Numbered from the stretch's first letter, positions 3,970 to 64,000 are shown. The stretch is DNA of 64,000 bases from Octopus sinensis (GCF_006345805.1 NC_043004.1:48174001-48238000); one strand, 5' to 3'. Translations and numbers: made by a program. The notes: generated by a model not told the origin, from the letters alone.

Positions 3970-4825
3970 TATTATTATTATTATTATTATTAATCTAATA
4001 TTCTCTTATCCTTCATTAATACCGGTTCCCATATGCTGTTCATATCTGCACTCGGTCTGTTTAGGAGGTTGTGTCCTAGCATATTTGCTGCTTCTTTTAG
4101 TTTTCGTATTTTCCAGTGGTGTTCTCTGTCTATTATTTTAACTTCATCCCACAGGAAGAAGTGGTCTCCATTTTTCCATACATGATCAGCTGTACCCGAT
4201 TTATCAATATCTCCACGTGCCACAGCTTTGTGATGTTCCTCTACCCTTATTTTGAGGGGGCGGCATGTTTCGCCTTTGTATAACCTACCACAACTGCATG
4301 GGATGGAGTACGCGCAGTTCTTAGTCATATTCTCTTCTATTGGTGGTTTTACTCGAAGGAGATATTTGCGAAGTGTTGTATTACATTTGAATACTTTCCT
4401 GATGTCATATGGGCCGCATATCTTTTGTATCTTTTCGGAGAGGTCTTTCACATAGGACAGAGAGACTGTGGACAGCTTATTGGTTTCACCTTCTCTTTTC
4501 TTCATAATTGGAGTGGAGAGTATGCTTTTGGGATTGTTGTTGCTTAAAAGATTGTTGTTGAGCTTGATCATTTCTTCGTAGTGGGTATCACGATCGCTAC
4601 TTATATTCTTTGCTCGATGTTTTAGGCACTGAGCAATCCCTCTCTTTACGCTATATGGATGGTGGGAGTTGAAGTTGAGGTATCGTCCAGTGAAAGTCGG
4701 CTTGCGGTATACGGATGTCCTGAATCCATACTTGGTGCGTGTTATTAATAAGGCCAGGAATGCTAGCTGATGGTCTTTTTCCTCTTCCATTGTGAACTGT
4801 ATGGATGGCTTTATTGAGTTCACAT
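3640..4825 (-). mobile_element. Penelope-like element: RT C-terminus + GIY-YIG endonuclease, with terminal-repeat region at about 3640-3890
   Basis: ORF 3990-4823: SIQFTMEEEKD..LAFL...VYRKPTFTGRYLNFNSHHP, CAYSIPCSCGRLYKGET.RPL..RVEEH. Confidence 0.9.
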
Positions 4826-5306
4826 GATCTAACAGCTACTATTCTTGATGAATAAACACACACAGACACACACACAAATACTTACATATCTGTGTGGTAT
4901 TTTGTATCGTTTATTTGTTTCAAGGGGCATCACCTTCGAGATTATAGTCTTAATCGAATGAAATATATGTGTGTGTGTGAGTGTATGTATGTATGTATGT
5001 ATGTATGTATGTATGTATGTATGTATGTATGTATGTATGTATGAGTGTATATATGTATGTGTCTATATATGTATGTAAGAATAAATGTATGTATCTATGT
5101 ATATATGTATGTGTATATATATATATATATATATGTGTATATATCTATGTATGAATGTATATATGTAAGTAAGCATACACACATATAAATGTATATTTTT
5201 AACGAAGCATGTCACCTATATTCAGAAGGAAACCTTAGCACGTCAACATGTTAAACATGGAAAACTATAATACACGTTTGTTAATCTTGGTAATTTTTAC
5301 TTATTA

Positions 5307-6773
5307 CTACATTTTTGATATTTTCTTAAGGGCCAAACTTGCTATAGACTTTTTGTCAAACTTGCCACTAGCCAAAAGTGGAAATGAAGGAAAATATAAA
5401 ATATAATCAGGGTGCATCGATACACAATCAAAGACATCTGGATGCGGCATTGTTTCCGTACAAAACTTTTTCAATTCTACTTCATTGAATTCGTGATCTG
5501 GCCGAAGGGTAACGCAGGCGCATACACGTTCTCCAACTGCCTGGTCAGGGATTGGTACAACAACCACAGCATCTACACTCGGATGACGTCCGATGTAATC
5601 TTCAATAAGTTTAATAGATAATTTTACTGTACACTTCTTAATAAAATCAGTGCTTCTTCCAACCATTATGAGATCACCATCTTCAGTTAAGTAACAAACA
5701 TCTGATGTTGGATACCAACCATTTTCTAAACATGAAGTGCCATCCAGATATGTTTTTGCTATATATTTGCTTCGAAAATACAAATAGCCTGTCTTTCCAA
5801 TATCCACAACTCTCTTCTCCTCGTCAACAATTTTGATTTCCGTTCCTGCAACTGGTCGCCCGAGCATTCCTTGTTGATGTTCTGAAATGTTTTCTAGAGT
5901 AAACACTTTGTACGATACCGTGAAAGATTCAGTACTTCCATAAACAACTAAGAATGAATCTGCAACCTTCAAAGCATTTTCTATTGTATCCCGGGTAATC
6001 ATGTCTCCACTTGACAATAACGTAGGGACACGGAAATCGCGGTCGCTAAGTCGCTTCACATCTTGTGGTGCAACACCAACCATGTTACATTCTTCACTCT
6101 GCCATATCTTTATAACAAAATCGAGGTTCTTCGGATCATTCAACATTTCTACGTCTCGCTGACATGCAATGATCCTCTAGTTACCACATTCAGGAGATAT
6201 CCTCCAATATATCCCATTGGCCGACCACTAAACATGATAAGACGAGAACTCTCATTAAAATCTGAATCAGGTGAGATTAAGCATTCAAAATGGCTGTGAC
6301 AGATACCTTTGGGCACACCAGTGCTTCCTGAAGTCTGATTGATGGATGCAATATCTTCTGGGTCAATGTAAGGAAACTCAACCTCGTCATCGTCACTTAT
6401 TTCTGCCATCAATTTAGCAGCAGATAAAGCATTGGCTGGTCTGTGTGTATTGGACACATCAATGGCAAACTTCAAATCTGGACACGCTTCGCAAGATACT
6501 TTTCCATTATCGCTTATTTGTGCAATGGATAAGAAACTGTCCCAAATAGATTTGGAAACAAATACAACAGCACTGCATCCTTTTATAATAGATTTCATAT
6601 CTGCTAATCCAAACATTAATCTTATAGAATATGCTCCCGTCATCATGATTCCAATATCGTAGCTCATCCATTCTACACAGTTAGGAACACAAAATGCAAT
6701 CTTGTCTCCTTTTTCAATGCCTAATTTCATCAAAGACTTTGCGAACTTCACAGCTCCATCGTACATCTCTTTC
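5307..6773 (-). pseudogene. Cassette A: disabled ANL (acyl-CoA synthetase-like) catalytic exon
   Basis: Split into ORFs 6149-6766 and 5307-6146 by a 1-nt deletion near 6157. Acceptor is CAA instead of CAG (6774-6776). AATATA replaces AATAAA (5217-5222). Confidence 0.85.
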
Positions 6774-7398
6774 TTGTAAAGAAAAGTAGTATATTTAACA
6801 TATATGCTCCTAAGTACATAGTTTCATAATATAGTATATTGTATATACTTAATATTTCTGCATTTCCTTGAGAGGACTCAGAGCATCTTTGTTGATAATT
6901 GACTGATCTAGCAAGCAAAACTAACCAGAAATTGATGTAGATATCCTCAATCTGGAGTCTGCCCCAATGTATGCACAATAACGGACTCTGCTACAGACAT
7001 CTAAGATGCCAGATGGTGATACCTGTTTCAGGATTAAATCTACGGTCAAGTAGAGTGTTTCGAGATACAAAATAAGAACGCAAAAATATATTTACAGAAG
7101 AAATCCTGCAAGATATGTGAGCCAACATTTTCCCAGTTCTACAAATCTACCACCAGGGACTGAAACCTTTTACTAATCTTGGAAGGATGATAATCAACTC
7201 AATCGGATTTGAATTCAGAAACAGAAAGTAGCAACAAATACCACGAGATATTGCTTCCGTGACAGTAAGTAATACATAGTTCAAACGTACAGAAAACAAA
7301 AGACAAAGACAGATGACGGAACAACAAACAGGTGTATTACTTTAATGCATGGAAAGATTGGATAAGTCTTTGACATTACGGGCCTATGTTCATATATA

Positions 7399-7430
<32 letters not shown>

Positions 7431-7631
7431 CGTATGTATGTATGTATGTATGTATGTATGTATGTATGTATGTATGTATGTATGTGTGTACCTAGGTATG
7501 TATGTGAGTATCTCGGTATGTATGTATATATGTATGTGTATATGTATGTCTATATATCTATGTATGTATGAATGTATATATGTATGTAAGCATACACACA
7601 TATAAATCTATATTTAACGAAGCATGTCGCC

Positions 7632-7637
7632 TTTATT
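7632..7637 (-). terminator. AATAAA poly(A) signal of cassette B
   Basis: tttatt on + strand, at the same homologous position as in C and D. Confidence 0.6.
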
Positions 7638-7664
7638 CAGAAGGAAAGCGTAGCACGTTAACAT

Positions 7665-7856
7665 CTTCTGATTGATGGATGCAATATCTTCTGGGTCAAT
7701 GTTAGGAAACTCAACTGCGTCATCGTCACTTATTTCTGCCATCAATTTAGCAGCAGATAAAGCATTAGCTGGTCTGTGTGTATTGGACACATCAATGGCA
7801 AACTTCAAATCAGGACACGCTTCGCAACATACTTTTCCATTATCGTTTATTTGTGC
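7665..7856 (-). pseudogene. About 192-bp internal fragment of the ANL exon inserted in the 3' flank of cassette B
   Basis: Encodes AQINDNGKVCCEACPDLKFAIDVSNTHRPANALSAAKL...PEDIASINQ. Interrupts the sequence cacgttaacat|gttaaacatgg that is contiguous in C and D. Confidence 0.9.
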
Positions 7857-7919
7857 CATGTTAAACATGGAAAACTATAATACACGTTTGTTAATCTTGG
7901 TAAATTAATTTAATTATTA

Positions 7920-9387
7920 CTACATGTTTTTTATTTTCTTAAGGGCCAAACTTGCTATAGTCTTTCTGTCAAACTTGCCACTGGCCAAAAGTGGAAATGA
8001 AGGAAAATATAAAATATAATCAGGGTGCATCGAAACACAATCAAAGTTATCTGGATCCGGCATTGTTTCCGTGCAAAACTTTTTCAATTCTTCTTCTTTG
8101 AACTCGTGATTTGGCAGAAGGGTAACGCACGCGCATACACGTTCTCCAACGGCCTGGTCAGGGATTGGTACAACAACCACAGCATCTACACTCGGATGAC
8201 GTCCGATGTAATCTTCAATAAGTTTAATAGATAGCTTTACTGTACACTTCTTAATAAGATCTGTGCTTCTTCCAACCATTATGAGATGACCATCTTCAGT
8301 TAAGTAACAAATATCTGATGTTGGATACCAACCATTTTCTAAACATGAAGTACCATCCAGATATGTTTTTGCTATATATTTGCTTCGAAAATACAAATAG
8401 CCTGTCTTTCCAGTATCCACAACTCTCTTCTCCTCGTCAACAATTTTGATTTCTGTTCCTGCAGCTGGTCGCCCGAGCATTCCTTGTCGATGTTCTGAAA
8501 TGTTTTCTAGAGTAAACACTTTGTAAGATACGAAAATAGATTCAGTACTTCCATAGCCAACTAAGAAGGAATCTGCAACCTTCAAGGCATGTTCTATTGT
8601 TTCTCGGGTAATCATGTCTCCACCTGATATTAGCATATTGAGACGGAAATCGCGGTCGCTAAGTCGCTTCACATCTTGGGGTGCAACTCCAACCATGTTA
8701 CATTCTTCACTCTGCCATATCTTTATAACAAAATCGAGGTTCTTCGGATCATTCAACATTTCTACGTCTCCACTAACATGCAATGATCCTCTGGTTACCA
8801 CATTCGAAGGATATCCTCCAATATATCCCATTGGCCGACCACTAAACATGATAAGACGAGAACTCTCATTAAAATCTGAATCAGGTAAGTTTACATATCC
8901 AAAATGGCTGTGACAGATACCTTTGGGCACACCAGTGCTTCCTGAAGTCTGATTAATGGATGCAATATCTTCTGGGTCAATGTAAGGAAACTCAACCTCG
9001 TCATCGTCACTTATTTCTGCCATCAATTTAGCAGCAGATAAAGCATTGGCTGGTCTGTGTGTATTGGACACATCAATGGCAAACTTCAAATCTGGACACA
9101 CTTCGCAAGATACTTTTCCATTATCGCTTATTTGTGCAATGGATAAGAAACTGTCCCAAATAGATTTGGATCCAAATACAACAGCACTACATCCTTTTGT
9201 AATAGATTTCATATCTGCTAATCCAAACATTAATCTCATAGAATATGCTCCAGTCATCATGATTCCAATATCGTAACTCATCCATTCTACACAGTTAGGA
9301 ACACAAAATGCAATCTTGTCTCCTTTTTCAATGCCTAGTTTCATCAAAGCCTTTGCGAACTTCACAGCTCCATCGTACATCTCTTTC
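7920..9387 (-). CDS. Cassette B: ANL-superfamily adenylate-forming enzyme, catalytic (terminal) exon; 537 aa if spliced to exon 15961-16106
   Basis: Intact 486-codon ORF with TSGSTGVPKG P-loop, YGSTE, GWYPTSD, GRSTDLIK, SGKFD lysine. Acceptor cttttctttacag|G at 9388-9390. Confidence 0.9.
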
Positions 9388-10143
9388 CTGTAAAGAAAAG
9401 TAGTATATTTAACATATATGCTCCTAAGTACATAGTTGCATAATATAGCAGATTATATATACTTAATATTTCTGCATTTCCTTGAGAGGACTCAGAGAAT
9501 TTTGTTGATAATTGACTGATCTAGCAAGCAAAACTGCCCAGAAATTGGTGTAGATATCCTCAATCCGGAGAGTGACCCAATGTATGCACAAGAGCGGACT
9601 CTGCTACAGAGACCTAAGATGCCAGATGGTGATACCTGTTTCAGGATTAAATCTACGGTCAAGTAGAGTGTTTCGTGATACAAAATCGGAACGCAAAAAT
9701 ATATTTACAGAAACAAATCCTGCAAGATATGTGAGCCAACATTTTCCCAGTTCTACAAATCTACCACGAGGGACTGAAACTTTTTACTAATCTTGGAAGG
9801 ATGATAATCAACTCAATCGAATTTGAATTCAGAAACAGAAAGTAGCAACAAATACCACGAGACATTGCTTCCGTGACAGTAAGCAATACACAGTTCAAAC
9901 TTACAAAAAACAAAAGACAAAGACAGGTGACGGAACAACGAACAGGTGTATTACTTTAATGCACGGAAAGATTGGATAAGTCTTTGACATTACGGGCCTA
10001 TATTCATATTTATATATATATATATATGTATGTATCTATGTATGTATGTATGTATGTGTGTATATATCTATGTATGTATGAATGTATATATGTATTTAAG
10101 CAGACACACATATAAATGTATATATTTAACGATGCATGTCGCC

Positions 10144-10149
10144 TTTATT
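10144..10149 (-). terminator. AATAAA poly(A) signal of cassette C
   Basis: tttatt about 96 nt after the stop. Confidence 0.6.
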
Positions 10150-10244
10150 TAGAAGGAAACCATACCACGTTAACATGTTAAACATGGAAAACTAAAACAC
10201 GTCTGTTAATCTTGGTAATTTATATTTACTTATTACTACATTTT

Positions 10245-11703
10245 TTATATCTTCTTAAGGGCCAAACATTTTATAGTCTTTCTGTCAAACTTGCCACTGG
10301 CCAAAAGTGGAAATGAAGGAAAATATAAAATATAATCAGGGTTCATCGATACACAATCAAAGTTATCTGGATTCGGCATTGTTTCCGTACAAAACTTTTT
10401 CAGTTCTTCTTCATTGAACTCGTGATTTGGCCGAACGGTAACGCACGCGCATACACGTTCTCCAACTGCCTGGTCAGGGATTGGTACAACAACCACAGCA
10501 TCTACACTCGGATGACGTCCGATGTAATCTTCAATAAGTTTAATTGATAACTTTACTGTACACTTCTTAATAAAATCTGTGCTTCTTCCAACCATTATGA
10601 GATCACCATCTTCAGTTAAATAACAAATATCTAATGTTGGATACCAACCATTTTCTAAACACGAAGTACCATCCAGATATGTTTTTGCTATATGTTTACT
10701 TCGAAAATACAAATAGCCTGTCTTTCCAATATCCACGACCCTCTTCTCCTCGTCAACAATTTTGATTTCCGTTCCTGCAATTGGTCGCCCGAGCATTCCT
10801 TGTTGATGTTCTGAAATGTTTTCTAGAGTAAACACTTTGAAAGATACCAAAATAGATTCAGTACTTCCATAGGCAACACAGAATGAATCTGCAACCTTCA
10901 AGGCATGTTCTATTGTTTCTCGGGTAATCATGTCTCCACCTGACGTTATCATATTGACACGGAAATCGCGGTCGCTAAGTCGCTTCACATCTTGTGGTGC
11001 AACATTAACCATGTTACATTCTTCACTCTGCCATATCTTTATAACAAAATCGAGGTTCTTCGGATCATTCAACATTTCTACGTCTCCACTGACATGCAAT
11101 GATCCTCTGGTTAACACATACAAAGGATATCCTACAATATATCCCATTGGCCGACCACTAAACCTGATAAGACGAGAAATCTCATTAAAATCTGAATCAG
11201 GTAAGTTTAAGCATTCATAATGGCTGTGACAGATACTTTTGGGCACACCAGTGCTTCCTGAAGTCTGATTAATGGATGCGATATCTTCTGGGTCAATGTA
11301 AGGAAACTCAACTTCGTCATCGTCACTTATTTCTGCCATCAATTTAGCAGCAGATAAAGCATTGGCTGGTCTGTGTGTATTGGACACATCAATGGCAAAC
11401 TTCAAATCTGGACACGCTTCGCAAGATACTTTTCCATTATCGCTTATTTGTGCAATAGATAAGAAACTGTCCCAAATAGATTTGGATCCAAATACAACAG
11501 CACTACATCCTTTTATAATAGATTTCATATCTGCTAATCCAAACATTAATCTCATAGAATATGCTCCAGTCATCATGATTCCAATATCGTAGCTCATCCA
11601 TTCCACACAGTTAGGAACACAAAATGCAATCTTGTCTCCTTTTTCGATGCCTAGTTTCATCAAAGCCTTTGCGAACTTCACAGCTCCATCGTACATCTCT
11701 TTC
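10245..11703 (-). CDS. Cassette C: ANL catalytic (terminal) exon; 534 aa if spliced
   Basis: Intact 483-codon ORF with the same motifs (variants PKS, TLD). Acceptor ctttactttacag|G at 11704-11706. Confidence 0.9.
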
Positions 11704-12554
11704 CTGTAAAGTAAAGTGACATATTTAACATATATGCTCCTAAATCCATAGTTTCATAATATAGTAGATTATATATATTTAACATTTTTGCATTTCCTTG
11801 AGAGGACTCAGAGAATTTTGTTGATAATTGACTGATCTAGCAAGCAAAACTGCCCAGAAATTGGTGTAGATATCCTCAATCTGGAGTCTGCCTCAATGTA
11901 TGAACAATAACGGACTCTGCTACAGACATCTAAGATGCCAGATAGTGATACCATTTGGAGGATTAAATCTACGGCCAAGTAGAGTGTTTCGAGATACAAA
12001 ATCGGAACGCAAAAACATATTTACAGAACAAATCCTGTAAGATATGTGAGCCAACATTTTCCCAGTTCTACAAATCTACCACGAGGGACTGAAACTTTTT
12101 ACTAATCTTGGAAGGATGACAATCAACTCAATCCGATTTAAATTCAGAAACAGAAAGTAGCAGCAAATACCACGAGGCATTGTTTCCGATGCTTCAACTT
12201 CTCTACCAGTAAGCCTCCTTTATAAACAATGTACATCGATTTCCATTTCTAATAGACCATAAGTACGCCAAACATTTAAGATGAGCGTGACTCGAGTATG
12301 AATGTTTATGCTTCTACACACAAGAAAATATATTGGCATACAAACACAGGTACAATGAACGTTGCACGTCACCTGCTCTGTCATGCGTTGCCTGATCAAT
12401 AAGTATCAAGTCTTGCTATAGTAACGAAGCTGAAGAACGCAGAATAAAGCTACTTAGCACAGAATGACCTTGAACTCTGCTGCGCATGTGCACTAAGTTT
12501 TAACATACTAGCTTAGTTCCTGTTTACAACAGTTCCTGGAAGGAAAGTGTGTAG

Positions 12555-13094
12555 TGTGTGATCGTCGCTCTGACCATGATAGAGAAAGTTGAGCAGAGAA
12601 TCTGCATCAAGTTTTGCCAAAAGCTTGGTGAGACCTGCTCAAAGGCCTACGCAAAGTTTTCAAAAAAGTTTTCATCGTTCTCGACACAGTCAAAGAGATC
12701 TTATTCAACTGAAACCCGAGTGTCTTTTTGGTCTGCTGAAAACAGTTTTCGCACAATCTTGGGAGATACGCGTATCATACCCAAATCGTCGGTGATAACG
12801 GACTAAACTGAACCGTAACTAATCTACACAGCGCCCCATAACTCATGGATGGTGATTCGATGATTTTCCCTCAAAGCTTCACGCACATTTGCGATATTTT
12901 TCTCAGTTCTGCTGGTCTCCCAGAACGTTCATCAATATCGACATTTTTTCGGCCATATTGGAAACGTCTGGAACACTTGTACACTCGTGTGCGGCACATA
13001 CACCCCTCTCCATATACCTTTTGCAAATTTTGTAGATCTTGAGCGGGTTTCGCCATAACAGCTTCATCCGACATGGTCAATGCGAATATCACAC
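12555..13094. mobile_element. Two convergent mariner transposase 5' fragments
   Basis: + strand EQRICIKFCQKLGETCSKAY from 12558. - strand LQKVYGEGCMCRTRVYKCSRRFQYGRKNVDIDERSGRP from 13092. Outer ends are inverted copies (gtgtgatcgtcgctctgaccatg / rc gtgtgatattcgcattgaccatg). Confidence 0.8.
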
Positions 13095-13577
13095 GTTACA
13101 CACCTAAGATCCATGGTGGTAGAGTTGGAAAATGTAGAAACTCCCAATGGTAATCCATTTGGGTTGATGGTTAGGTGGATGAGGATAGATACCTAAGGTT
13201 CGAGGAAAAGGTAAGAGAGAGATGACGGCCCATAAGTGGTGGAAGTTCAGTCAGGTAGGATCAAACTGTGATAAGCAGGTGAAAGTATGTAATACATAGT
13301 TCAAATGTACAAAACACAAAAGACAAAGACAGGTGACGGTACAACGAACAGGTGTATTAGTTTAATGAACGGAAAGATTGGATAAGTCTTTGACATTACG
13401 GGCCTATATTCATATATATATATATGTGTGTATGTATGTATGTATGTATGTATGTATGTATGAACGTATGTATGTATGTATGTGTGTGTGTGTGTATATA
13501 TATCTATGTATGTATGAATGTATATATGTATGTAAGCATACACATATAAATGTATATATTTAACGAAGCATGTCGCT

Positions 13578-13583
13578 TTTATT
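13578..13583 (-). terminator. AATAAA poly(A) signal of cassette D
   Basis: tttatt about 73 nt after the stop. Confidence 0.6.
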
Positions 13584-13655
13584 TAGAAGGAAACCTTAGC
13601 ACGTTAACATGTTAAACATGGAAATCTAAAACACGTTTGTTAATCTTGGTAATTT

Positions 13656-15132
13656 TTACTTATTACTACATTTTTTTATTTTCTTAAGGGCCAAACTTGC
13701 TATAGTCTTTCTGTCAAACTTGCCACTGGGCAAAAATGGAAATGAAGGAAAATATAAAATATAATCAGGGTGCATCGATACACAATCAAAGTCATCTGGA
13801 TGCGGCATTGTTTCCGTACAAAACTTTTTCAATTCTTCTTCATTGAACTCGTGATTTGGCCGAAGGGTAACGCACGCGCATACACGTTCTCCAACGGCCT
13901 GGTCAGGGATTGGTACAACAACCACAGCATCTACACTCGGATGACGTCCGATGTAATCTTCAATAAGTTTAATAGATAATTTTACAGTACACTTCTTAAT
14001 AAAATCAGTGCTTCTTCCAACCATTATGAGGTCACCATCTTCAGTTAAGTAACAAACATCTGATGTTGGATACCAACCATTTTCTAAGCATGAGGTTCCG
14101 TCCAGATGTGTTTTTGCTATCCATTTACTTCGAAAATACAAATAGCCTGTCTTTCCAATATCTACAACCCTCTTCTCCTCGTCAACAATTTTGATTTCTG
14201 TTCCTGCAACTGGTCGCCCGAGCAATCCTTGTTGATGTTCTGAAATGTTTTCTGGAGTATAAACTTTGTACGATACCGTGAAAGATTCAGTACTTCCATA
14301 AACAACTATGAAATAACCTGTAAGCTTCAAAGCATTTTCTATTGTATCCCGGGTAACCATGTCTCCACTTGACATTAACATAGGGACACTGAAATCGCGG
14401 TCGCTAAGTCGCTTCACATCTTGTGGTGCAACACCAACCATGTTACATTCTTCACTCTGCCATATCTTTATAACAAAATCGAGGTTCTTCGGATCATTCA
14501 ACATTTCTACGTCTCCACTAACATGCAATGTTCCTCTAGTTACCGCAGTCAAAGGATATCCTCCAATATATCCCATTGGCCGACCGCTAAATGTGATAAA
14601 ACGGAAACTCTCATTAAAATCTGAATCAGGTAAGTTTAAGCATTCGAAATGGCTGTGACAGATACCTTTGGGCACACCAGTGCTTCCTGAAGTCTGATTG
14701 ATGGATGCAATATCTTCCGGGTCAATGTAAGGAAACTCAACCTCGTCATCGTCACTTATTTCTGCCATCAATTTAGCAGCAGATAAAGCATTGGCTGGTC
14801 TGTGTGTATTGGACACATCAATGGCAAACTTCAAATCTGGACACGCTTCGCAAGATACTTTTCCATTATCGCTTATTTGTGCAATGGATAAGAAATTGTC
14901 CCAAATAGATTTGGATCCAAATACAACAGCACTACATCCTTTTATAATAGATTTCAGATCTGCTAATCCAAACATTAATCTCATAGAATATGCTCCCGTC
15001 ATCATGATTCCAATATCGTAGCTCATCCATTCTACACAGTTAGGAACACACAATGCAATCTTGTCTCTTTTTTTAATGCCTAGTTTCATCAAAGCCTTTG
15101 CGAACTTCACAGCTCCATCGTACATCTCTTTC
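13656..15132 (-). CDS. Cassette D: ANL catalytic (terminal) exon, proximal; 540 aa when spliced
   Basis: Intact 489-codon ORF. Acceptor ctttactttacag|G at 15133-15135. 828-nt GT-AG intron to the exon ending at 15961. Confidence 0.92.
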
Positions 15133-15960: not shown

Positions 15961-16106
15961 ATGGTTATTTGGTGCCTTTTGAATTCTGCATCATAGCAAA
16001 CAATTGTTACTCTGTCTGGATATTTTTCAGCTCTCTTACGCAATCTTTCAGGAATCGTCTCATACGAAACTTGCGAATCCTCTTTTGTATGAAGGTAACT
16101 CGACAT
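15961..16106 (-). CDS. Single N-terminal coding exon of the ANL locus (48 codons + 2 nt)
   Basis: Hand translation: MSSYLHTKEDSQVSYETIPERLRKRAEKYPDRVTIVCYDAEFKRHQIT-AT|G, matching the acyl-CoA synthetase N-terminal pattern TIxExLxxxAxxxPD. caaaATG start context; donor CAT|GTAAGT. Phase 2 matches |G AAA GAG ATG of every cassette. Confidence 0.9.
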
Positions 16107-34516: not shown

Positions 34517-36308
34517 GCTGTTCTCAAGGCAGCCGGCTTCGGTCCAGTCTTCCGCGGGTGGATCGCTGCTTTATACTGCTTTATACAGCAACATCTGCTC
34601 GGTGATACGGGTGATGCCCTCTCTCCTCCCTTTTGTACATATTGACTCTCGAGCCATTACTGCGCAAGTTGGAGGCTTTGAGGGGTATCCCGCGCGATCT
34701 AGGAGGCGGAAACAGCGTGTCTGCCTATGCCGACGACGTCACCGTGATGGTGTCGAGCCACAGGCACATTGGCCTGATTGGCGAGACACTAAACGAATAC
34801 GAAGCGGTGACAGGGGCAAAGATTAACGCGGAAAAGTCTGTGGGCTTGCAACTGGGCACCTGGAGAGGCAAGCCCATGCCGTCCAACAGCGTCATAGGGC
34901 GCTGGACAGACGGACCCGTTAAACTGCTCAGGGTCTGGTTCGGTCCGGACCTCCAGGTGGATAAAAACTGGGAAGAAGTGACGAGCAGGGTGGCACGTCT
35001 CACCCAGAAATGGGCCGAGAGGAAGCTGTCCCTGAAAGGTCGAGCGGAGGTGGCGAATGCATACATCGCATCCGTCATCTATTACCTGCTCTTCGACTTT
35101 TTGTGGAAGGGTCAGGTGCCACTGGTCAGGCGATCCATCTGCTGTCAACGACCGCTGAACGGAGGCCTTGGCATGTCGTGGTTACTGATGCGCAGACATG
35201 CGCTCAGGCTGCGACATCTCAAGCGTTTCCTAGACGGTGATCAGGTGTGGTCGTCTTTTGTCAGACGCGACTTTCCGCAGCTCGTCTCTTTGACAGAGCT
35301 GCAGACCTGGATCAAACGTAGACCGAGAAAGGGCGCTTGGCACCTCGAGTGCCGTCAAGCTCTCTCCGCCCTCCGTCAGGCGGGCAATGCGATCGGTTTT
35401 AGTTCCACTCGCGTTCTATAGAGGGTTAGTGGAGGAAAAATGCGACAACGTTCTCGGGGAAACTCTAGGCGTTGATGATAACGAACTGAGCGGTCTGTTC
35501 GGAAGGACTTTCGGGCCGGGGCCAATGGATAATTTCCAGAGGTCGCTCGCCTGGCAGTGCTACCGAGGGGCTCTGCCTGTTCGGGATAAACTCTACCGGC
35601 ACGGAAGTCCCATCAGCCGGGCATGCCCGAGGTGTTGCCAGGACGACGAAACCGTTCTGCACGCACTCGTCCAGTGCCCGAGTATTGCTGAACTATGGGT
35701 TTATGTCGAACAGCTACTGTAGCGTATAGGACGGATCTGGCTATCAGCCGAATCCATAGTGAAGATTGCCCCGCCGACCTCCTTTAACAAGGAGGGCGAG
35801 GCCGTTTTCCTGTGCCTAGTGGCTGTGGCGAAAGAGATTGTATGGTGGACCCGTTTGAAAGAGCTAATGTCAGACACTTTCCTCTTTGATCAAGGCCTCA
35901 TCAACTTTTTCAAGTTTCACTTGAAAAGGAAGATGAGGTTAGAGAGGAGAGTGCTGTCCTATAGCAAGTTTTCTGAAAGGTGGGTGAATTGTGCGAGAAT
36001 GGCCAGTATAAATGGACCAATTCTCAGGTTTCGCCTGTGATTGAAAAAGGTTTTATAAAAGGAGAAAGGGGCTCTCTACCCACCTTTTGACCAGGCTCCC
36101 GTTGGCTTTTATGGTTTTTTTTTCCACCAGGAACCTTTCGAAGCGCCTCCCCCTATTGGGAGTTTTTCATTGTTACAATCTTTCGTTGTTAAACAGTTTT
36201 TACTCGAATTTTTTCAAAAACGGACAAAACCCTTTGTAACCTTTCGTCCTGTTTTGTTCCTTTATGTTTACTAATCATGTGTGTCAGCCCTTGTGGCCAA
36301 TAAAAATA

Positions 36309-57662: not shown

Positions 57663-58283
57663 CTCTGGATGATAAACAAAAGATAGCCATTTGCTTGAAA
57701 AAAATTTTTAAAAAACATTAAAATATTATCTGTTTAAAGAAAGCTAAAATATAAATACTTCCTGTACAAAAAACTTATAGTTTGGAAATTGCATTCAGTT
57801 AAAACTATTTCTAAATTATTTAGAATATTGTGTACGTCAAAAAGTCGATTTTTTTCCTTAGAGAACGCGAATACTATGTGTGTATACATGTCACAGATAG
57901 CAGACGAGTGTTTGTGTTGATTGACATGCCATGACATTCATTATACGTGTGTGAATTCCGTATGTGGGTTTGTGTGTTGACGTCACGAAAGTAATGTTTT
58001 TTTTTCGTCAAGAAATAACAAATAAAAATTGTGTTTAATCGCTTTCCTTAATAAATTGAATCCCAAATATCACAAAACTTTGTACTACACTGCTGAAGGT
58101 AAATATGAAAGTAAATTAAGATAAATATAATATTTCTGAGATATTTCAGGTACACACAAACATCTCTAGAGTTTTAGTATTATCAAGATGTGGATAGAAG
58201 GGCATCTCTAGATAATATTATTACTAATATTACCATCACCAACACGAATACAACAATCACCACTCTTATTATTATCATTATTA

Positions 58284-58350
<67 letters not shown>

Positions 58351-58984
58351 CATTATTATTATTATTATTATTCAGTAGTCTTATTTTTATCATGTGCTTT
58401 CACTGCACTACCGAGCGCAGCTCTGCGTACCTTGGGTTTGTGCAGTTGTTTGTTCTGATGGTCAAACGCACATACATCCTATGTAAAGTGCTTTACATAG
58501 GACGTGTGGTGCCTAGTGGTGCTATTTTTAATGCTATATATACTTGTAAGTTGTGGTGTTTTTGTTATGTATCTGTCTGAATGTATTTTTTTATCATACC
58601 TAATGTGCCTACTATAATAGGAATTGTTTCTGTTTTTAGGCTCCACGTTCAAGTTAACTCTACTTCCAGATCTTTATACTTTGAAAGTTTCTCCATTTCT
58701 TTTAAAGAAACATTGTCATCTCTTTGTATTCATTCATCGATTAGAAGCCATTTTTTCTTCGTGATATCTGACAACTATATCCGGCCTATCAACCTTGATT
58801 TCTCTATCTATGTGTATTGGCATATCCCAAAGTATGGTTGCTTTCTCATTTTCTGTGACCTTTTCTGGGGTGTGCCTATACCATCATTTTTCTGTTGCTA
58901 TTTCATAGTATTGGCATAGCTTCCAGTGTATATAGGTCCCAACTCTGTTGTGTCTGTGAATGTACTCCTTCTTAGCCAGTACTC

Positions 58985-60135
58985 TGGTGGTGGTGGTGCT
59001 GGTGCTGGTGGTGGTGGTTTGGTGGTGGTTTGCTGGTGTGCTGGTGGTGGTGTGGTGGTGGGGTGGTGGTGCTGGTGCTGGTGGTGTGGTATGGTGGTGA
59101 TTGGTGGTGATGGATGGTGGTATGGTGCTGGTGGTTGGTGGTGGTGGTGCTGGTGGTGGTGATGGTGCTGGTGGTGCTGGTGGTGCTGGGTTGGTGCTGG
59201 TGGTGGGCTGCGGTGGTGGTGCTGGTGGCTGGTGGTGGTGCTGGTGGTGCTGGTGGTGTGGTGGTGCTGGGGGGGTGGGGTGTGGCGGTAATGGTGGTGC
59301 TGATGTGCTGGTGGTGCTGGTTGCTGGTGTGCTGGTGGTGCTGGTGGTGCTGGTGGTGATGGTGGTGTGGCGGTGACCCTGGTGTATGGTGGTGCTGGTG
59401 GGCTGGTGTGGTGGCTGGTGGTGCTGGTTTGCTGGTGGTGCTGGTGCTGGTGGTGCTGGTGGTGCTGGTGGTGATGGTGCTGGTGGGCTGGTTGCTGGTG
59501 GTGCTGGTGGTGTGGCGGTACTGGTGGTGTGATGGTGCTGGTGGGCTGGTGTGCTGTGCTGGTGGTGGTGGTGCTGGTGGTGCGGTGGTGCTGGTGTGCG
59601 GTGTGGTGCGGTGGTGCTGGTGGTGATGGTGCTGGTGGTGCTGGTGCTGGTGGTGCTGGTGGTGCTGGCGGTACTGGTGGTGACTGATGGTGCTGGTGGT
59701 GGTGGTGCTGGTGGTACTGGTGGTGGTGCTGGTAGTGCTGGTGGTGCCGGTGGTGCTGGTGCTGGTGGTGGTGCTGGTGCTGGTGGTGCTGGTGGTGGTG
59801 GTGCTAGGTGTGCTGTGTGCCGGTGGTGCTGGTGCTGGTGGTTGTGGTGGTGATGGTGGTGCTGGTGGTGCTGGTGGTGCTGGTGGTGCTGGTGGTGCTG
59901 GTGGTGCTGGTGGTGCTGGTGGTGGTGGTGTGGTGTGGTGCTGGTGGTCGATGGTGGTGGTGGTGGTGCTGGTGCTGTGCGGTGGTGGTGCTGGTGGTGG
60001 CGGTGGTGCTGGTGGTGGTGGTGCTGGTGCTGGTGCTGGTGGTGCTGGTGGTGCTGGTGGTGCTGGTGGTGCTGGTGGTGTGCTTGCTGGTGGTGCTGGT
60101 GTGGTGCTGGTGGTGCTGGTGGTGGTGCTGGTGGA
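58985..60135. repeat. About 1.15-kb cryptic (TGG)/(TGC) trinucleotide tract
   Basis: Seen directly; very low A content on + strand. Confidence 0.95.
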
Positions 60136-63100
60136 GATGACAATCATGATAATGATGATGGAATGTTACTGTTGCTTGCAGCACCCATTGAACAGATTAT
60201 TTTTGATTCAATATAGCTTTCATTCTATCTCAACGGAAACCAGTCAAGTAATTTATTCCAAAGGACATTCAGTTCAGAAACTACGGTATTCCTGAAAAAC
60301 TAAGGCTGGCATTGCTACCAGCGAGGTATTAGTGGTTCTGTGTAAAATCGAAAGTTCCTTGGAGTCGAGTATAGTCGAGATGTCCGTAGAGAGACACAAT
60401 CGTGCTTCTCGTATTTGTCTGTAAGGCCTAATCAATTTCTTCACGTTCTACTTGAAAAACAGAGTATGAGTTGGGGTGGAGATGCCACCCGCTAGCAAAT
60501 TTAATGAAAAATATGTGAAAGGGATAATAAGAAACATTAGAACCACGACCAGACATATTCGCAAAGATGTCGATGCTTGATTTGTTGTCAACAGTAGGGA
60601 TTTGAGATGATCGGAGAGTTGATGCGTAACAATGTGATTTGGTGGGACCTGTGTAGGCATCAAGTTCCAACTGACATGCGAAGATCAGAAATCCATTCTA
60701 AAGCTGTATCCCCATGGAGGAAGTGGAGAGAAGGTTATCAGGCCCGTGGTGGAGACAAGATTATCCGAGGAATGGCAAAGAACATTTGAAAGTCGTCTGC
60801 GCAGAGAAGAAGGAAAGGCGGAAGAAACAGGAATGCAGTAGAAGGCGGCAGATGCAGTAACAGTAACAACACCAACTTACCCGGAAGTAAGGAATTTAAC
60901 TGCTGCTGTTGTTTCTATAGCAACGGTCATTGCACCTCTGTAATATCTGTAGAGGAGATAAGACAACCGAACTCGTTTTCAGTGCCGTTAGCACTAGTAC
61001 TCGATGATGATTGAGGACGTTTCTTCGTCCGGAAACTACTAGTAACACCACCGCTACTGTCTTGCAGTGAATGGCAGACGATAGCAGTTGGAGGGGAATA
61101 AGAAAGCACGAAGAAATTTGAAAGAGAAAAAAGAAACAAGCAAAGTGTGGTCCCCAGCAGAAGACAAAGAAGAGAGAAGAAAGTAAAATACCTCATGAGG
61201 AGGCACCCATAGCCATAGAGCCTTGCCTTACAATGAATACTGGCTTTCTTGGTCTGTTGCTAACCCTGGAAAAGAATGGAGTAAATAATATGTAAATGAG
61301 AGGAGGGTTGCAGCACACACCAGTGGACCTTGGAGACTTATGATAAAGAAACGTTAACGATCTACTAATATGGACGAAATAAACCCCAGATAATATGGGG
61401 TCGTTTAACGGTTCACTTATGGCCAAAATATTATGTAGGCGACTTCAAAGTACCGGGAGTATCTGATTGAGAGAAAACATTTGGAGTGAAATGTGTCTAG
61501 AGACGGGAGGGTTCTGATCCTATCTCGTACACAGGTATTCACCTTGTGTTGATAGATTATGCTTCTTGTTTTAGTTGTATCTATTTTTAATTATATTTAT
61601 TTGTACTTAGTTATAATTAGTATTACTTGTATTTGTATATCTCTCTTAATTATATTGCCCATCTCTTTTATGTCATTTATATGTGTATGGGGTTTTGGTT
61701 CGTTTGCTTTTGTTATTACCGATGTTGTTTCTGTGCTTGTGCAGCTAAGATTAATGTCTTGTGTTTTTGTTTTTAGTTCCGTCTTGATTTCTCTTTTGTG
61801 GGTGTAACTTTTGCTTTGTGTTTTACAGCCCCTTCTCGTAACAGCATGCATCTCGATGTGTCCTCCTTTTTCTCTTCTTCATTTGACGATTACTCGGATG
61901 AAGGCTGCTTGATATATATTTTACAAATATATCGAACCTGGATGACACAGGCTGCCTGATACAGCAGGGCTTCCAACTAGAGTTAATTAAAATCACCTTA
62001 GCCACATTAAAGTCGCAAACCTTTAACAAATTCGTTGGAGGGGAACACTTCCTCGCCAACTTCACTTTCCTTTACTTTTGAACTTTTATGCCGAGGACTG
62101 CTAGACGTAACTTCTAAAATCCTTTGGTCTAGCAGTGCTACCAGGACAGGCACGGATGCCTCGAACAGTTTCAGGGCTGTCTGAGATGCATGCAGACAGC
62201 CCGGATCCCACTCGCGCAGTATCCGAGCATTAATGACTTGAAGAGTCATGTCAAACATACGTTGTTGTGAATAGAACAGGTCCAGCTATCGGCCGAGTTT
62301 ATCGTGAAAATCGCCTCAAAACCCTTTTAATAGGGATGGGAAGGTAATGCTCCTCTGTCTGGGGGTTATGGCGAAAGTGCTTTTTGTGCTGGACGAGACA
62401 GAGGATAGAGACGGTTCTCTTCAAGCAAACCCTCGTTATACTTGCAAATCAAAGTGAGAGGCGCTCTTCCCCAGTGGACTTGTCAAATCTGTAACAAGAA
62501 CGATTATGATGAACGAAACTTCTGTAAGTATTTGCCTGTAGATGGGAGAAAAACTGTTGGCAGAGAGTAAACTTGGACTTGTAGTGTTACTTGTTTCTCC
62601 CAAGAAGACTGTATCATTCATACGCTCATGTTTTAGTATATCATGTATACTTTTCATCTCCTCTCCCTCCACCACCTTTTCTTCACCCTATTTTATGTAA
62701 ACATCCACGCAAAGTGTAATCTAACGTGTCCTTTATAAGACGCCCCTGTGGCAAATAAGATAACTTGCCGACAAATTTACATCAAACGGCTGCAATTTTG
62801 AGGGACAACTGAAAGTGCACATTCTCAGAAAATATTCTGAATCTACTACACTTTCCGTCCTCAAAATGCATGAGGATAAATATATTTGTGAATTATTAAC
62901 ATCACGCTCTGAAGGAAAGAATAAAATAACAGGCGAATTTCATCATTCTTACACAAAACTGTTCGACTAAACTTACTTTTTTTCTTTCTTTCCTTTCCGT
63001 TTTTCCTTTCTTCTTTTTCTTTTTACCAGGTACAAAATTGAAAACTGATGTCATTGTATCAAAATAAGAACGCTGGAGTTGCTCGTTTATATTTTAAATG

Positions 63101-63189: not shown

Positions 63190-64000
63190 AACTTATTCGG
63201 CCATTAAGTATGAAATCTGTAGAAAAGAAACAAAGTTTGCTAATGTTTTATAAATACAAAGAATAGTTTTATTCATCAAAAGTATGCACCCATATTGTCA
63301 ATACACTTTGCCATTTCAGCGGTAGCTTGTCCAACCCGGAACTGTAAAAGCCTAGCAATCTAGAGTCAATAAAATCTTGGAATGCCTGTTTTACAGCATC
63401 GTCGGAATTAAATATTTTTCCTGTCAAAAACTTATCCAAAATTCTGGAAGACGTAGTAGTCAGTGGGGGCAAGATCATGTGAGTATGGTGGGTGATGGAA
63501 AACTTGCAACTCCAACTCCTGTAGTTTCGCCACAGTTATGTTTGCTATGTGTGGTCTGGTGTTGTCCTGCAATAAAATAGAAGTGCATCTGATGACTAAT
63601 CTTTTTTTCTGCATCATTAAGTCCAGTTGGCTGCAGTATATTTCGGCCGTGATTGATGAGCCAGGTTTAATGAAATCATAATGGATCACACCTGCGCCAG
63701 ACCACCAAACACACACCATCACCTTCTTTTGATGAATTTTGCTTTTTGGACTGTTTTGGTGGCTCGTCTTTGTCCAACCGTTGTGCTGAACATTTACGGT
63801 TGTTGTGATGGATCCATTTCTCATCACATGTTACAATTCGATTCAAAAGTGATTCATTTTTGTGAGGAGAAAGTATCATAATGCAGACTTCGAAACGTTG
63901 CTGTTTCTGATTTTCATTGAGTTCATGTGGAACCCACTTATCCGACTTTTTCATTTTACCGATTCAAACTAGGTGAGTCAATATTGTTTGCTTGCTCACA
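63190..64000 (-). mobile_element. mariner (DD34D) transposase, frameshifted, running off the window end
   Basis: KWVPHELNENQK..RFEVC, RIVTCDEKWI, KVMVCVWWS, LQDNTRPH, HPPYSHDLAPTDYY. Confidence 0.9.

Follow-up and report, generated by a model that had tools for sequence, protein, structure and literature searches.

The locus described here raises the question of whether a row of nearly identical coding cassettes in an octopus genome provides a single gene with enzymes for different substrates. It lies in a stretch of 64,000 nucleotides (nt) of Octopus sinensis genomic DNA (GCF_006345805.1 NC_043004.1:48174001-48238000), which is called the window throughout and whose coordinates are used for all positions. 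An initial annotation had described four cassettes (A to D) of a predicted adenylate-forming enzyme, with their differences concentrated in the substrate-binding pocket, and had proposed that they were selected for different carboxylates, which was also taken as an argument that B and C are expressed. The explanation that we favour, and hold to be probable, is that the cassettes are alternative 3'-terminal exons of one gene, derived from tandem duplication, with divergence focused on the pocket and different substrates as the likely consequence.

The window contains a ~1.47-kb reading frame in four tandem copies, preceded by a short exon 1, all on the minus strand and in the transcriptional order exon 1, D, C, B, a cassette fragment and A. 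The repeat unit is 90-94% identical between copies and includes several hundred bases of flank on either side. The minus-strand open reading frame (ORF) at 13656-15125, of 489 amino acids (aa), is 100% identical to the RefSeq protein 'medium-chain acyl-CoA ligase ACSF2, mitochondrial-like isoform X1'. Cassette residues are numbered from K1, which is residue 50 of isoform X1. The features of the locus are:

15961..16106, minus strand: shared exon 1; ATG at 16106, 146 nt coding (48 codons plus 2 nt), encoding MSSYLHTKEDSQVSYETIPERLRKRAEKYPDRVTIVCYDAEFKRHQIT(M)
13656..15132, minus strand: cassette D, the promoter-nearest terminal exon; acceptor CAG/G at 15135-15132, stop TAA at 13658-13656, AATAAA at 13583-13578
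10245..11703, minus strand: cassette C; acceptor intact, stop TAA at 10247-10245, AATAAA at 10149-10144
7920..9387, minus strand: cassette B; acceptor intact, stop TAG at 7922-7920
7668..7871, minus strand: cassette fragment (aa 79-146 of a cassette; 204 nt, 68 codons), found by tblastn and abutting the 3' flank of B
5307..6773, minus strand: cassette A, pseudo-exon; 1-nt deletion between 6158 and 6157, acceptor CAA at 6776-6774
14232..14666 in D, with counterparts at ~10803-11237 (C), ~8487-8921 (B) and ~5874-6307 (A), minus strand: predicted pocket-bearing middle segment (aa 156-300), supported by region-wise and sliding dN/dS (the ratio of nonsynonymous to synonymous substitution rates) and by mapping of the DhbE/PheA code

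Exon 1 supplies 49 aa of the RefSeq protein, has a single tblastn match in the window when isoform X1 is used as query (100% identity) and ends at a consensus donor (GTAAGT, 15960-15955); donor and intron phase were read directly. B, C and D share an identical polypyrimidine tract and CAG/G acceptor, in the phase that completes a split Met codon cut after its second base, and the ORFs of B and C are intact in both O. sinensis and O. vulgaris. Exon 1 joined to D matches XP_029640038.1 (X1) at 100%, and its junctions with B and with C match XP_029640039.1 (X2) and XP_029640041.1 (X5) exactly. The cassettes of X3, X4 and X6 are located beyond the window start and were analysed at the protein level or by way of the O. 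vulgaris and O. bimaculoides loci; none of the RefSeq isoforms X1-X6 contains cassette A. Since each copy has its own stop, exon 1 is shared and the acceptors match, the cassettes are by their structure alternative terminal exons, each accounting for ~90% of the enzyme, and not internal cassettes. The four-cassette description of the initial annotation can be kept for B, C and D, which are intact, while A is frameshifted and has a CAA acceptor, and all of them are terminal exons. The shared-exon architecture is already present in the RefSeq annotation, and O. bimaculoides has an equivalent layout, with exon 1 followed by a proximal or a distal cassette. A literature search found no paper on this locus, the sole link being Gimenez et al. 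(2016).

At the 3' ends, D and C have a conserved AATAAA ~75-95 nt past the stop. The alignment of 3' flanks indicates that B and vX, an additional O. vulgaris cassette (prefixes v and b denote cassettes of O. vulgaris and O. bimaculoides), turn into the cassette fragment directly past TTTAACATG, the fragment replacing the ancestral 3' untranslated region; the nearest poly(A) signal downstream of the B stop is an AATAAA inside the fragment (7851-7846). The same fragment follows both vB and vX in O. vulgaris. In the simplest reading, the choice of cassette would result from splicing at the several acceptors competing with cleavage at the several poly(A) sites. Docking/selector pairing of the Dscam type was rejected as the mechanism, nothing rising above shuffled controls: intron 1, in its unique part, showed at most 8-9 nt of complementarity to the four cassette upstream flanks, no better than in shuffled sequence. 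A microsatellite of the (CATA/TATG)n type is found just downstream of the 3' flank of each cassette (4963-5134, 7281-7601, 10015-10092 and 13301-13563), within the duplicated unit, and may favour unequal exchange.

The gene product, annotated as an ACSF2-like medium-chain acyl-CoA ligase, is predicted to belong to the ANL superfamily of adenylate-forming enzymes. Every one of the ORFs matched Pfam AMP-binding (E = 1e-37 to 1e-40) and AMP-binding_C, D and B both matching PF00501 in that range and PF13193 at ~1e-8, and B, C and D carry the core ANL motifs TSGSTGVPK, YGSTE, WYPTSD, GRSTD and SGKFDRK (P-loop, A5, A7 Asp, A8 Arg and A10 Lys); residues G198, K204, E331, D407, R422 and K520 are invariant in 50 homologues. 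The nearest solved structure by sequence is DhbE (1MD9; HMMER, E = 1.5e-28). The AlphaFold2 model of isoform X1 has a two-domain ANL fold with a mean predicted local distance difference test score (pLDDT) of 89.1 and a predicted template modelling score (pTM) of 0.83, and Foldseek placed it closest in the PDB to CahJ, McbA, 4-coumarate-CoA ligase (4CL), benzoate-CoA ligase and luciferase (E ~1e-35 to 1e-38), with template modelling (TM) scores up to 0.79 and of 0.75-0.79 for the first four. The ANL N-terminal domain begins with strands and a helix that exon 1 encodes, for which the model has a pLDDT of 89-97, and this region is present in all the related cephalopod proteins. At the position equivalent to residue 235 of GrsA-PheA every cassette has Gly (HMMER alignment) or Ile (MAFFT alignment) and none has Asp; the substrate would therefore not be an alpha-amino acid, and an amino-acid-activating adenylation domain of a nonribosomal peptide synthetase (NRPS) was ruled out.

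The four variable segments quoted in the initial annotation were found in the sequence as given (A/B/C/D): HFECLI/HFGYVN/HYECLN/HFECLN, GGYLLNVV/GGYPSNVV/VGYPLYVL/GGYPLTAV, LLSSG/LISGG/ITSGG/LMSSG and, at the fourth, V/G/A/V before YGSTES followed by FT/IF/IL/FT. Its hand count for B and C (about 35 differences, 3 in the first part and 18 in the middle) came to 36 when repeated, with 2 in aa 1-155, 20 in aa 156-300 (19 of them in 156-290) and 14 in aa 301-486, and its PheA numbering agrees with the 1AMU chain, where LITAG contains 299 and 301, 322 is the residue before YG and 330 comes after TE. In the AlphaFold2 model the variable segments are placed in a short helix after the P-loop strand, at the start of the A4 helix, in the strand equivalent to PheA LITAG and in the strand leading into YGSTE.

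For the mapping of the specificity code, the HMMER alignment to DhbE was combined with a MAFFT alignment of 52 sequences, DhbE and PheA among them, and the DhbE-to-PheA correspondence was derived from our own alignment and from the pocket residues of EntE, which also define the pocket-base valines (PMC11661926). The PheA trio 235/236/239 corresponds to cassette residues 191/192/196 (HMMER) or 189/190/193 (MAFFT), one or two of which vary. The other positions are as follows (residues in the order A/B/C/D):

PheA 278, cassette 233: G/G/N/G
PheA 299, cassette 253: L/I/T/M
PheA 301, cassette 255: S/G/G/S
PheA 322, cassette 277: V/G/A/V
PheA 330, cassette 285: T/F/L/T
PheA 331, cassette 286: V, invariant
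PheA 517, cassette 471: K, invariant

The likeness to GrsA-PheA (1AMU) thus consists of a shared fold and pocket geometry, with variable cassette positions aligned to PheA 278, 299, 301, 322 and 330 and the A10 lysine (517) retained, while the octopus locus differs in being an animal gene with introns that has no carrier or condensation domain and is not an NRPS module. With DhbE/EntE (1MD9) identity is ~21%; the cassette stretch GYPLTA aligns to DhbE N235-Y236-P-L-S-S240 and the pocket-base valines have their counterparts in cassette positions 277 and 285, both of them variable, whereas Asn235 and Ser240, which bind dihydroxybenzoate, are not kept and there is no siderophore context.

The cassette differences are concentrated in the predicted pocket, as first described, and the enrichment is well beyond chance. 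Six or seven of the nine variable-type code positions differ among A-D, compared with 74 of all 485 columns (15%; hypergeometric p = 6e-4 or 4e-5). A broader pocket set of 33-36 residues, defined beforehand, includes 12-15 of the 74 A-D-variable columns, with 5 expected (hypergeometric p = 2e-3 to 6e-5), and 8-10 of 35 differences between B and C, with 2.5 expected (p = 1e-3 to 7e-5). This broad set derives from the NRPSpredictor list of 34 PheA residues lying no more than 8 angstroms from the substrate. Results are given both for this list and for the ten-residue code (PheA 235, 236, 239, 278, 299, 301, 322, 330, 331 and 517; PMC12283262). The resulting codes are GYAGMSVTV for D, GYVNTGALV for C, GYVGIGGFV for B, GYVGLSVTV for A and GYVSIGAFV for the O. 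bimaculoides cassette bD, so that every live cassette has a predicted pocket code of its own; relative to bD, B is the least changed and D and A the most.

Pairwise Nei-Gojobori dN/dS among the four copies of the window was 0.34-0.44 overall and 0.35-1.40 in aa 165-300, the maximum of 1.40 being that of B and C, on only 3.8 synonymous differences. Nonsynonymous (N) and synonymous (S) changes were also mapped by parsimony on a 10-sequence tree including the O. vulgaris orthologues, with O. bimaculoides as outgroup, and counted on the branches within the expansion:

Pocket set, 36 codons: N 30, S 10, dN/dS ~1.0
Rest of the exon: N 121.5, S 80.5, dN/dS 0.39
aa 156-300: N 81.5, S 34.5, dN/dS 0.63
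Outside aa 156-300: N 70, S 56, dN/dS 0.33
The four quoted segments, picked after seeing the data: N 44, S 9, dN/dS 1.5

Nonsynonymous changes amounted to 0.83 per codon in the pocket set and 0.27 elsewhere, about 3-fold, and synonymous changes showed no pocket excess. The N:S contrast with the rest of the exon was not significant for the pocket set (Fisher p = 0.11) and was significant for aa 156-300 (p = 0.017); with pooled dS the pocket-set dN/dS was 1.25, with a rough 95% range of 0.84-1.8. A sliding window of 30 codons, also with pooled dS, gave values raised in exactly two segments, peaking at ~1.2 (aa 151-195) and ~1.0 (aa 241-300), which are separated by a valley (aa 196-240) at 0.14-0.33; the flanks were at 0-0.6. 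The first outcome that the initial annotation named as refuting its proposal, a pocket segment without raised dN/dS, is therefore not what the data show. By these counts, the focus of divergence on the pocket is real.

The history of the array can be followed in related species. In O. vulgaris the locus (L001) is collinear, with 98.4% identity, and contains exon 1, vD, vC, vB, vX, vA and a further cassette, vF, and the O. bimaculoides locus (L003) contains exon 1, a single proximal cassette, bD, a transposon-rich gap, bF and bG. In neighbour-joining (NJ) trees bD falls outside the clade ((vX,(B)),(C)),((D),(A)), and in all exon thirds each O. sinensis cassette pairs with its O. vulgaris orthologue. 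By this topology the expansion that produced D, C, B, X and A is younger than the separation from O. bimaculoides and older than that between O. sinensis and O. vulgaris. Between the last two species, 7.5 kb of aligned non-coding DNA have diverged by 1.2%, with a transition/transversion ratio of 1.33; this mutation spectrum gives a neutral N:S expectation of 3.15 for these codons, against which the dN/dS of each lineage was measured:

D lineage: stem 0.66, terminal branches 0.19
B lineage: stem 0.36, terminal branches 1.19
C lineage: stem 0.59, terminal branches 0.37
A lineage: stem 0.39, terminal branches 0.42
vX: stem not applicable, terminal 1.16

Taken jointly, the B and C lineages have a dN/dS of 0.54 and an N:S of 1.70, compared with the neutral 3.15 (p = 0.006 for the nonsynonymous deficit). 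D differs from its O. vulgaris orthologue by 3 amino-acid changes, none of them in the pocket (dN 0.26%); its history is consistent with rapid change at first and tight constraint thereafter, and it is the sole copy clearly constrained since the species split. B and C show 12-14 residue changes each between species, six of which are at pocket positions (194, 195, 197, 253, 277 and 288). Of 36 comparisons of code residues between orthologues of the two species, 2 show a difference.

Membership of the array also differs between species. The additional O. vulgaris cassette vX (L001 12434-13894) is intact and located between B and A, where O. sinensis (7441-7920) has one cassette-plus-fragment unit fewer; this points to unequal crossing-over, with assembly collapse as an alternative source of the difference. 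The distal cassette (isoform X4 in O. sinensis; vF in O. vulgaris, L001 20367-21341) has YGSIE instead of YGSTE, a Thr to Ile change in A5 that may impair or alter catalysis, and bF keeps YGSTE.

Cassette A deserves separate attention. Its 1-nt deletion changes AGTGGAGAC to AGCGAGAC and is also found in vA; being common to both species, it must be of some age and is no error of assembly. At 5223-5216, GAATATAG stands where the ancestral AATAAA was, the signal being lost in both species, and the acceptor has changed from CAG to CAA in O. sinensis only. By these lesions, A is a decaying pseudo-exon. Beyond the shared frameshift, A (5307-6773; L001 15026-16485) has acquired no stop or indel in either species, and its terminal N:S is ~1.3, compared with 3.15; conversion from live neighbours is the likeliest source of this low value, and recent death or residual use are also possible.

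These data bear on the argument that divergence in the pocket speaks for the expression of B and C, which had to be abandoned, given that the frameshifted A shows equal pocket divergence. A dN/dS below 1 was likewise dropped as decisive proof that B and C function, A giving the same ~0.4, and so was the retention of an open frame along the short terminal branches of the two species: at the non-coding ratio of 0.19 frameshifting indels to one substitution, a neutral exon stays open with p ~0.13-0.45 per lineage. The lack of a second frame lesion in A makes the open-frame test weak over terminal branches and informative only over the whole history since duplication. The signs that B and C may be in use are indirect, namely the exact RefSeq models, the intact signals in two species, the nonsynonymous deficit outside the pocket and the layout in O. 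bimaculoides.

Several observations weigh against the explanation we favour. In no partition was dN/dS significantly above 1, even the four segments chosen post hoc (1.5) giving p = 0.17. Since the split of O. sinensis and O. vulgaris, dN of B and C has been 1.1-1.3%, the same as the 1.2% of non-coding DNA and the dN of the dead A, so the recent record does not show constraint on B and C. The cassette vX is absent from O. sinensis and evolves at a dN/dS of ~1.2, and A combines pocket residues that are equally divergent with a dN/dS of ~0.4 even on its terminal branches, which makes a low dN/dS a weak sign of function at this locus. The junctions between exon 1 and the cassettes are known here from RefSeq isoforms that are computed models, not reads; the variable residues are assigned to the pocket by homology, with the alignment ambiguous by two residues in the A4 region due to a two-residue insertion (MGY-IG-GYP); and gene conversion is active and blurs the tree-based counts.

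The main alternative, which we regard as possible but doubtful, is that these are redundant copies in a process of birth and death, where constraint is relaxed without specialisation, the pocket drifts first as the least constrained part, and D alone is functional. It would account for a pocket dN/dS of ~1 and not above it, for terminal-branch dN values of B and C close to non-coding divergence and to those of A, for the rate and the absence of vX, for the death of A and for the YGSIE cassette of X4/vF. On the other hand, it does not predict the nonsynonymous deficit outside the pocket in the B and C lineages relative to the neutral spectrum (p = 0.006), nor that B, C, D and vX have kept 486-codon frames, acceptors and AATAAA through ~8-14% synonymous divergence, all three of which A has lost. 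Code residues are mostly the same in the two species (the 2 of 36 above), and the pocket average of ~1 counts the invariant YGSTE residues, so some pocket sites would have evolved faster than neutral. The proposal of selection for different substrates can accordingly be retained in part: divergence is focused on the pocket, where dN/dS is raised to ~1, but no partition significantly exceeds 1, and selection on substrate is then inseparable from relaxed constraint on the pocket. Positive selection is possible and relaxed constraint fits a dN/dS of ~1 likewise, while the pocket codes suggest that the isoforms may handle different substrates.

A further alternative is that the middle of the exon looks divergent only since gene conversion erases differences at its ends. 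Among B, C and D, nt 1-465 indeed diverge by only 1.7-2.8% and nt 466-900 by 6.4-11.5%. In NJ trees of the first third, vF clusters with cassettes of its own lineage and bG with bD, a grouping that shifts in the middle third, where vF joins its orthologue bF; and vB and vC share I50, K87 and E88, where O. sinensis B and C both have M, S and D. The N-terminal third was thus partly homogenised by conversion, to which, rather than to selection, part of its sameness is due. This would explain a quiet N-terminus but not the focus on the pocket: synonymous change per site is alike in the middle and the C-terminal part (0.375 and 0.317) while nonsynonymous change is ~3-fold apart (0.238 and 0.085), so conversion does not explain the contrast between these parts, and conversion tracts leave the dN/dS valley at aa 196-240 unexplained. 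We consider a mosaic of this kind very unlikely as the source of the pattern.

That the cassettes are separate single-exon genes of 483-489 aa, with their own promoters and a start at the Met of MYDGAV, the isoforms with exon 1 being annotation artefacts, is highly improbable: a Met is present at cassette residue 3 in each ORF, the O. vulgaris annotation has separate genes of 483-486 aa and RefSeq also has 486-aa products for other cassettes, but all live copies of three species keep the polypyrimidine tract and CAG/G at one position and in a phase compatible with exon 1, the acceptor is lost in the dead A of O. sinensis, exon 1 encodes the well-modelled part of the ANL N-terminal domain that related cephalopod proteins also have, and no separate promoter turned up, though no search aimed at promoters was made.

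In the explanation that we favour, the window would hold the 5' part of one gene, with a single promoter-proximal exon of 49 aa and an array of terminal exons, and each transcript would join exon 1 to one cassette and end there, at the poly(A) signal of that cassette. D, C, B and the dead A would descend from a 2.3-3.4 kb unit that was duplicated in tandem once O. bimaculoides had split off. Most of the protein would have remained under purifying selection (dN/dS ~0.4), with the N-terminal third also partly homogenised, while pocket residues in the A4 helix and the helix after the P-loop, in the xSGG strand and on either side of YGSTE (one before, two after) would have changed at a roughly neutral rate. 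The isoforms would then most likely activate different carboxylic acids, D, proximal and most derived, having since been held fixed, and B and C still drifting or adapting.

The surroundings of the array contain traces of mobile DNA. Downstream of it, a 277-aa ORF on the minus strand (3990-4823) has a conserved counterpart at the corresponding site in O. bimaculoides (L003 18998-19537; MNSIKPSIQFTME...) and had no Pfam match; its Cys-rich stretch (...YSIPCSCGRLYKGET...EEH...) may resemble the GIY-YIG nuclease of Penelope-like elements. The spacer between D and C (12558-13092) includes ~0.8 kb that are absent from the other spacers, with short ORFs on both strands that presumably resemble the N-terminus of mariner-type transposases; the only one searched (12871-13092, minus strand) had no Pfam match at E up to 0.01. 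Elsewhere in the window there are two transposon remnants, a mariner-type Transposase_1 fragment (63432-63827, minus strand, E = 5e-19) and a weak reverse-transcriptase fragment below the Pfam cut-off (34633-35421, plus strand, E = 9e-5), and a low-complexity block (58000-60300) with a GC skew of +0.46, an AT skew of -0.43 and long spurious ORFs rich in His, Gln, Pro, Thr and Ala.

Arrays of variable exons are familiar from other animals. UGT1A and the clustered protocadherins have variable first exons, and in UGT1A the variable exon encodes the substrate-binding half of the enzyme, while Drosophila lola and mod(mdg4) combine shared 5' exons with many alternative 3' exons. The octopus locus shares with all of them a constant part and a tandem menu of duplicated variable exons; it differs in that its variable exons are 3' and encode nearly the whole enzyme, only 49 aa being shared, and in that a promoter for each exon is not needed. 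Vertebrate ACSM genes also form tandem clusters whose members differ in substrate range. The RefSeq name of the octopus protein comes from ACSF2, and all of these are stand-alone ANL enzymes, but non-cephalopod ACSF2-like proteins are only ~25-30% identical to it and the vertebrate paralogues are separate genes and not alternative terminal exons of one gene. The nearest studied cephalopod relatives are the crystal luciferases of Watasenia scintillans (wsluc, 'acyl CoA synthetase'), with 38% identity over 99% of cassette D, and O. bimaculoides proteins have been reported as the only homologues more than 30% identical to them (Gimenez et al., 2016; PMC4899746). These octopuses are non-luminous, there is no indication of a link to coelenterazine, and no cassette array has been described for the wsluc genes.

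If the copies were redundant, the locus would be an ordinary tandem array in birth and death, and a caution that variation focused on a pocket does not by itself show adaptation. If the isoforms do differ in substrate, it would represent an unusual animal route to diversity in metabolic or detoxifying enzymes, by alternative last exons rather than by separate genes, and a natural experiment in how an ANL code changes, with ~90% identity between copies, substitutions that can be polarised, an outgroup and a pseudo-exon as control. We would go further only tentatively: in the O. vulgaris group the locus could be a 'menu' for the activation of carboxylic acids, a mirror image of UGT1A, in which one promoter and a leader exon of 49 aa serve any of at least six terminal exons, each a nearly whole enzyme; their pocket codes would have been re-tuned since O. 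bimaculoides split off, and sister species would still differ in membership, the choice of exon being made by competition of splicing with polyadenylation. The family would be the non-luminous sister of the crystal luciferases. Since no relative of the Watasenia proteins is known to stand closer than this family, such a locus, if this is what it is, may show how the pocket of the firefly-squid luciferase arose.

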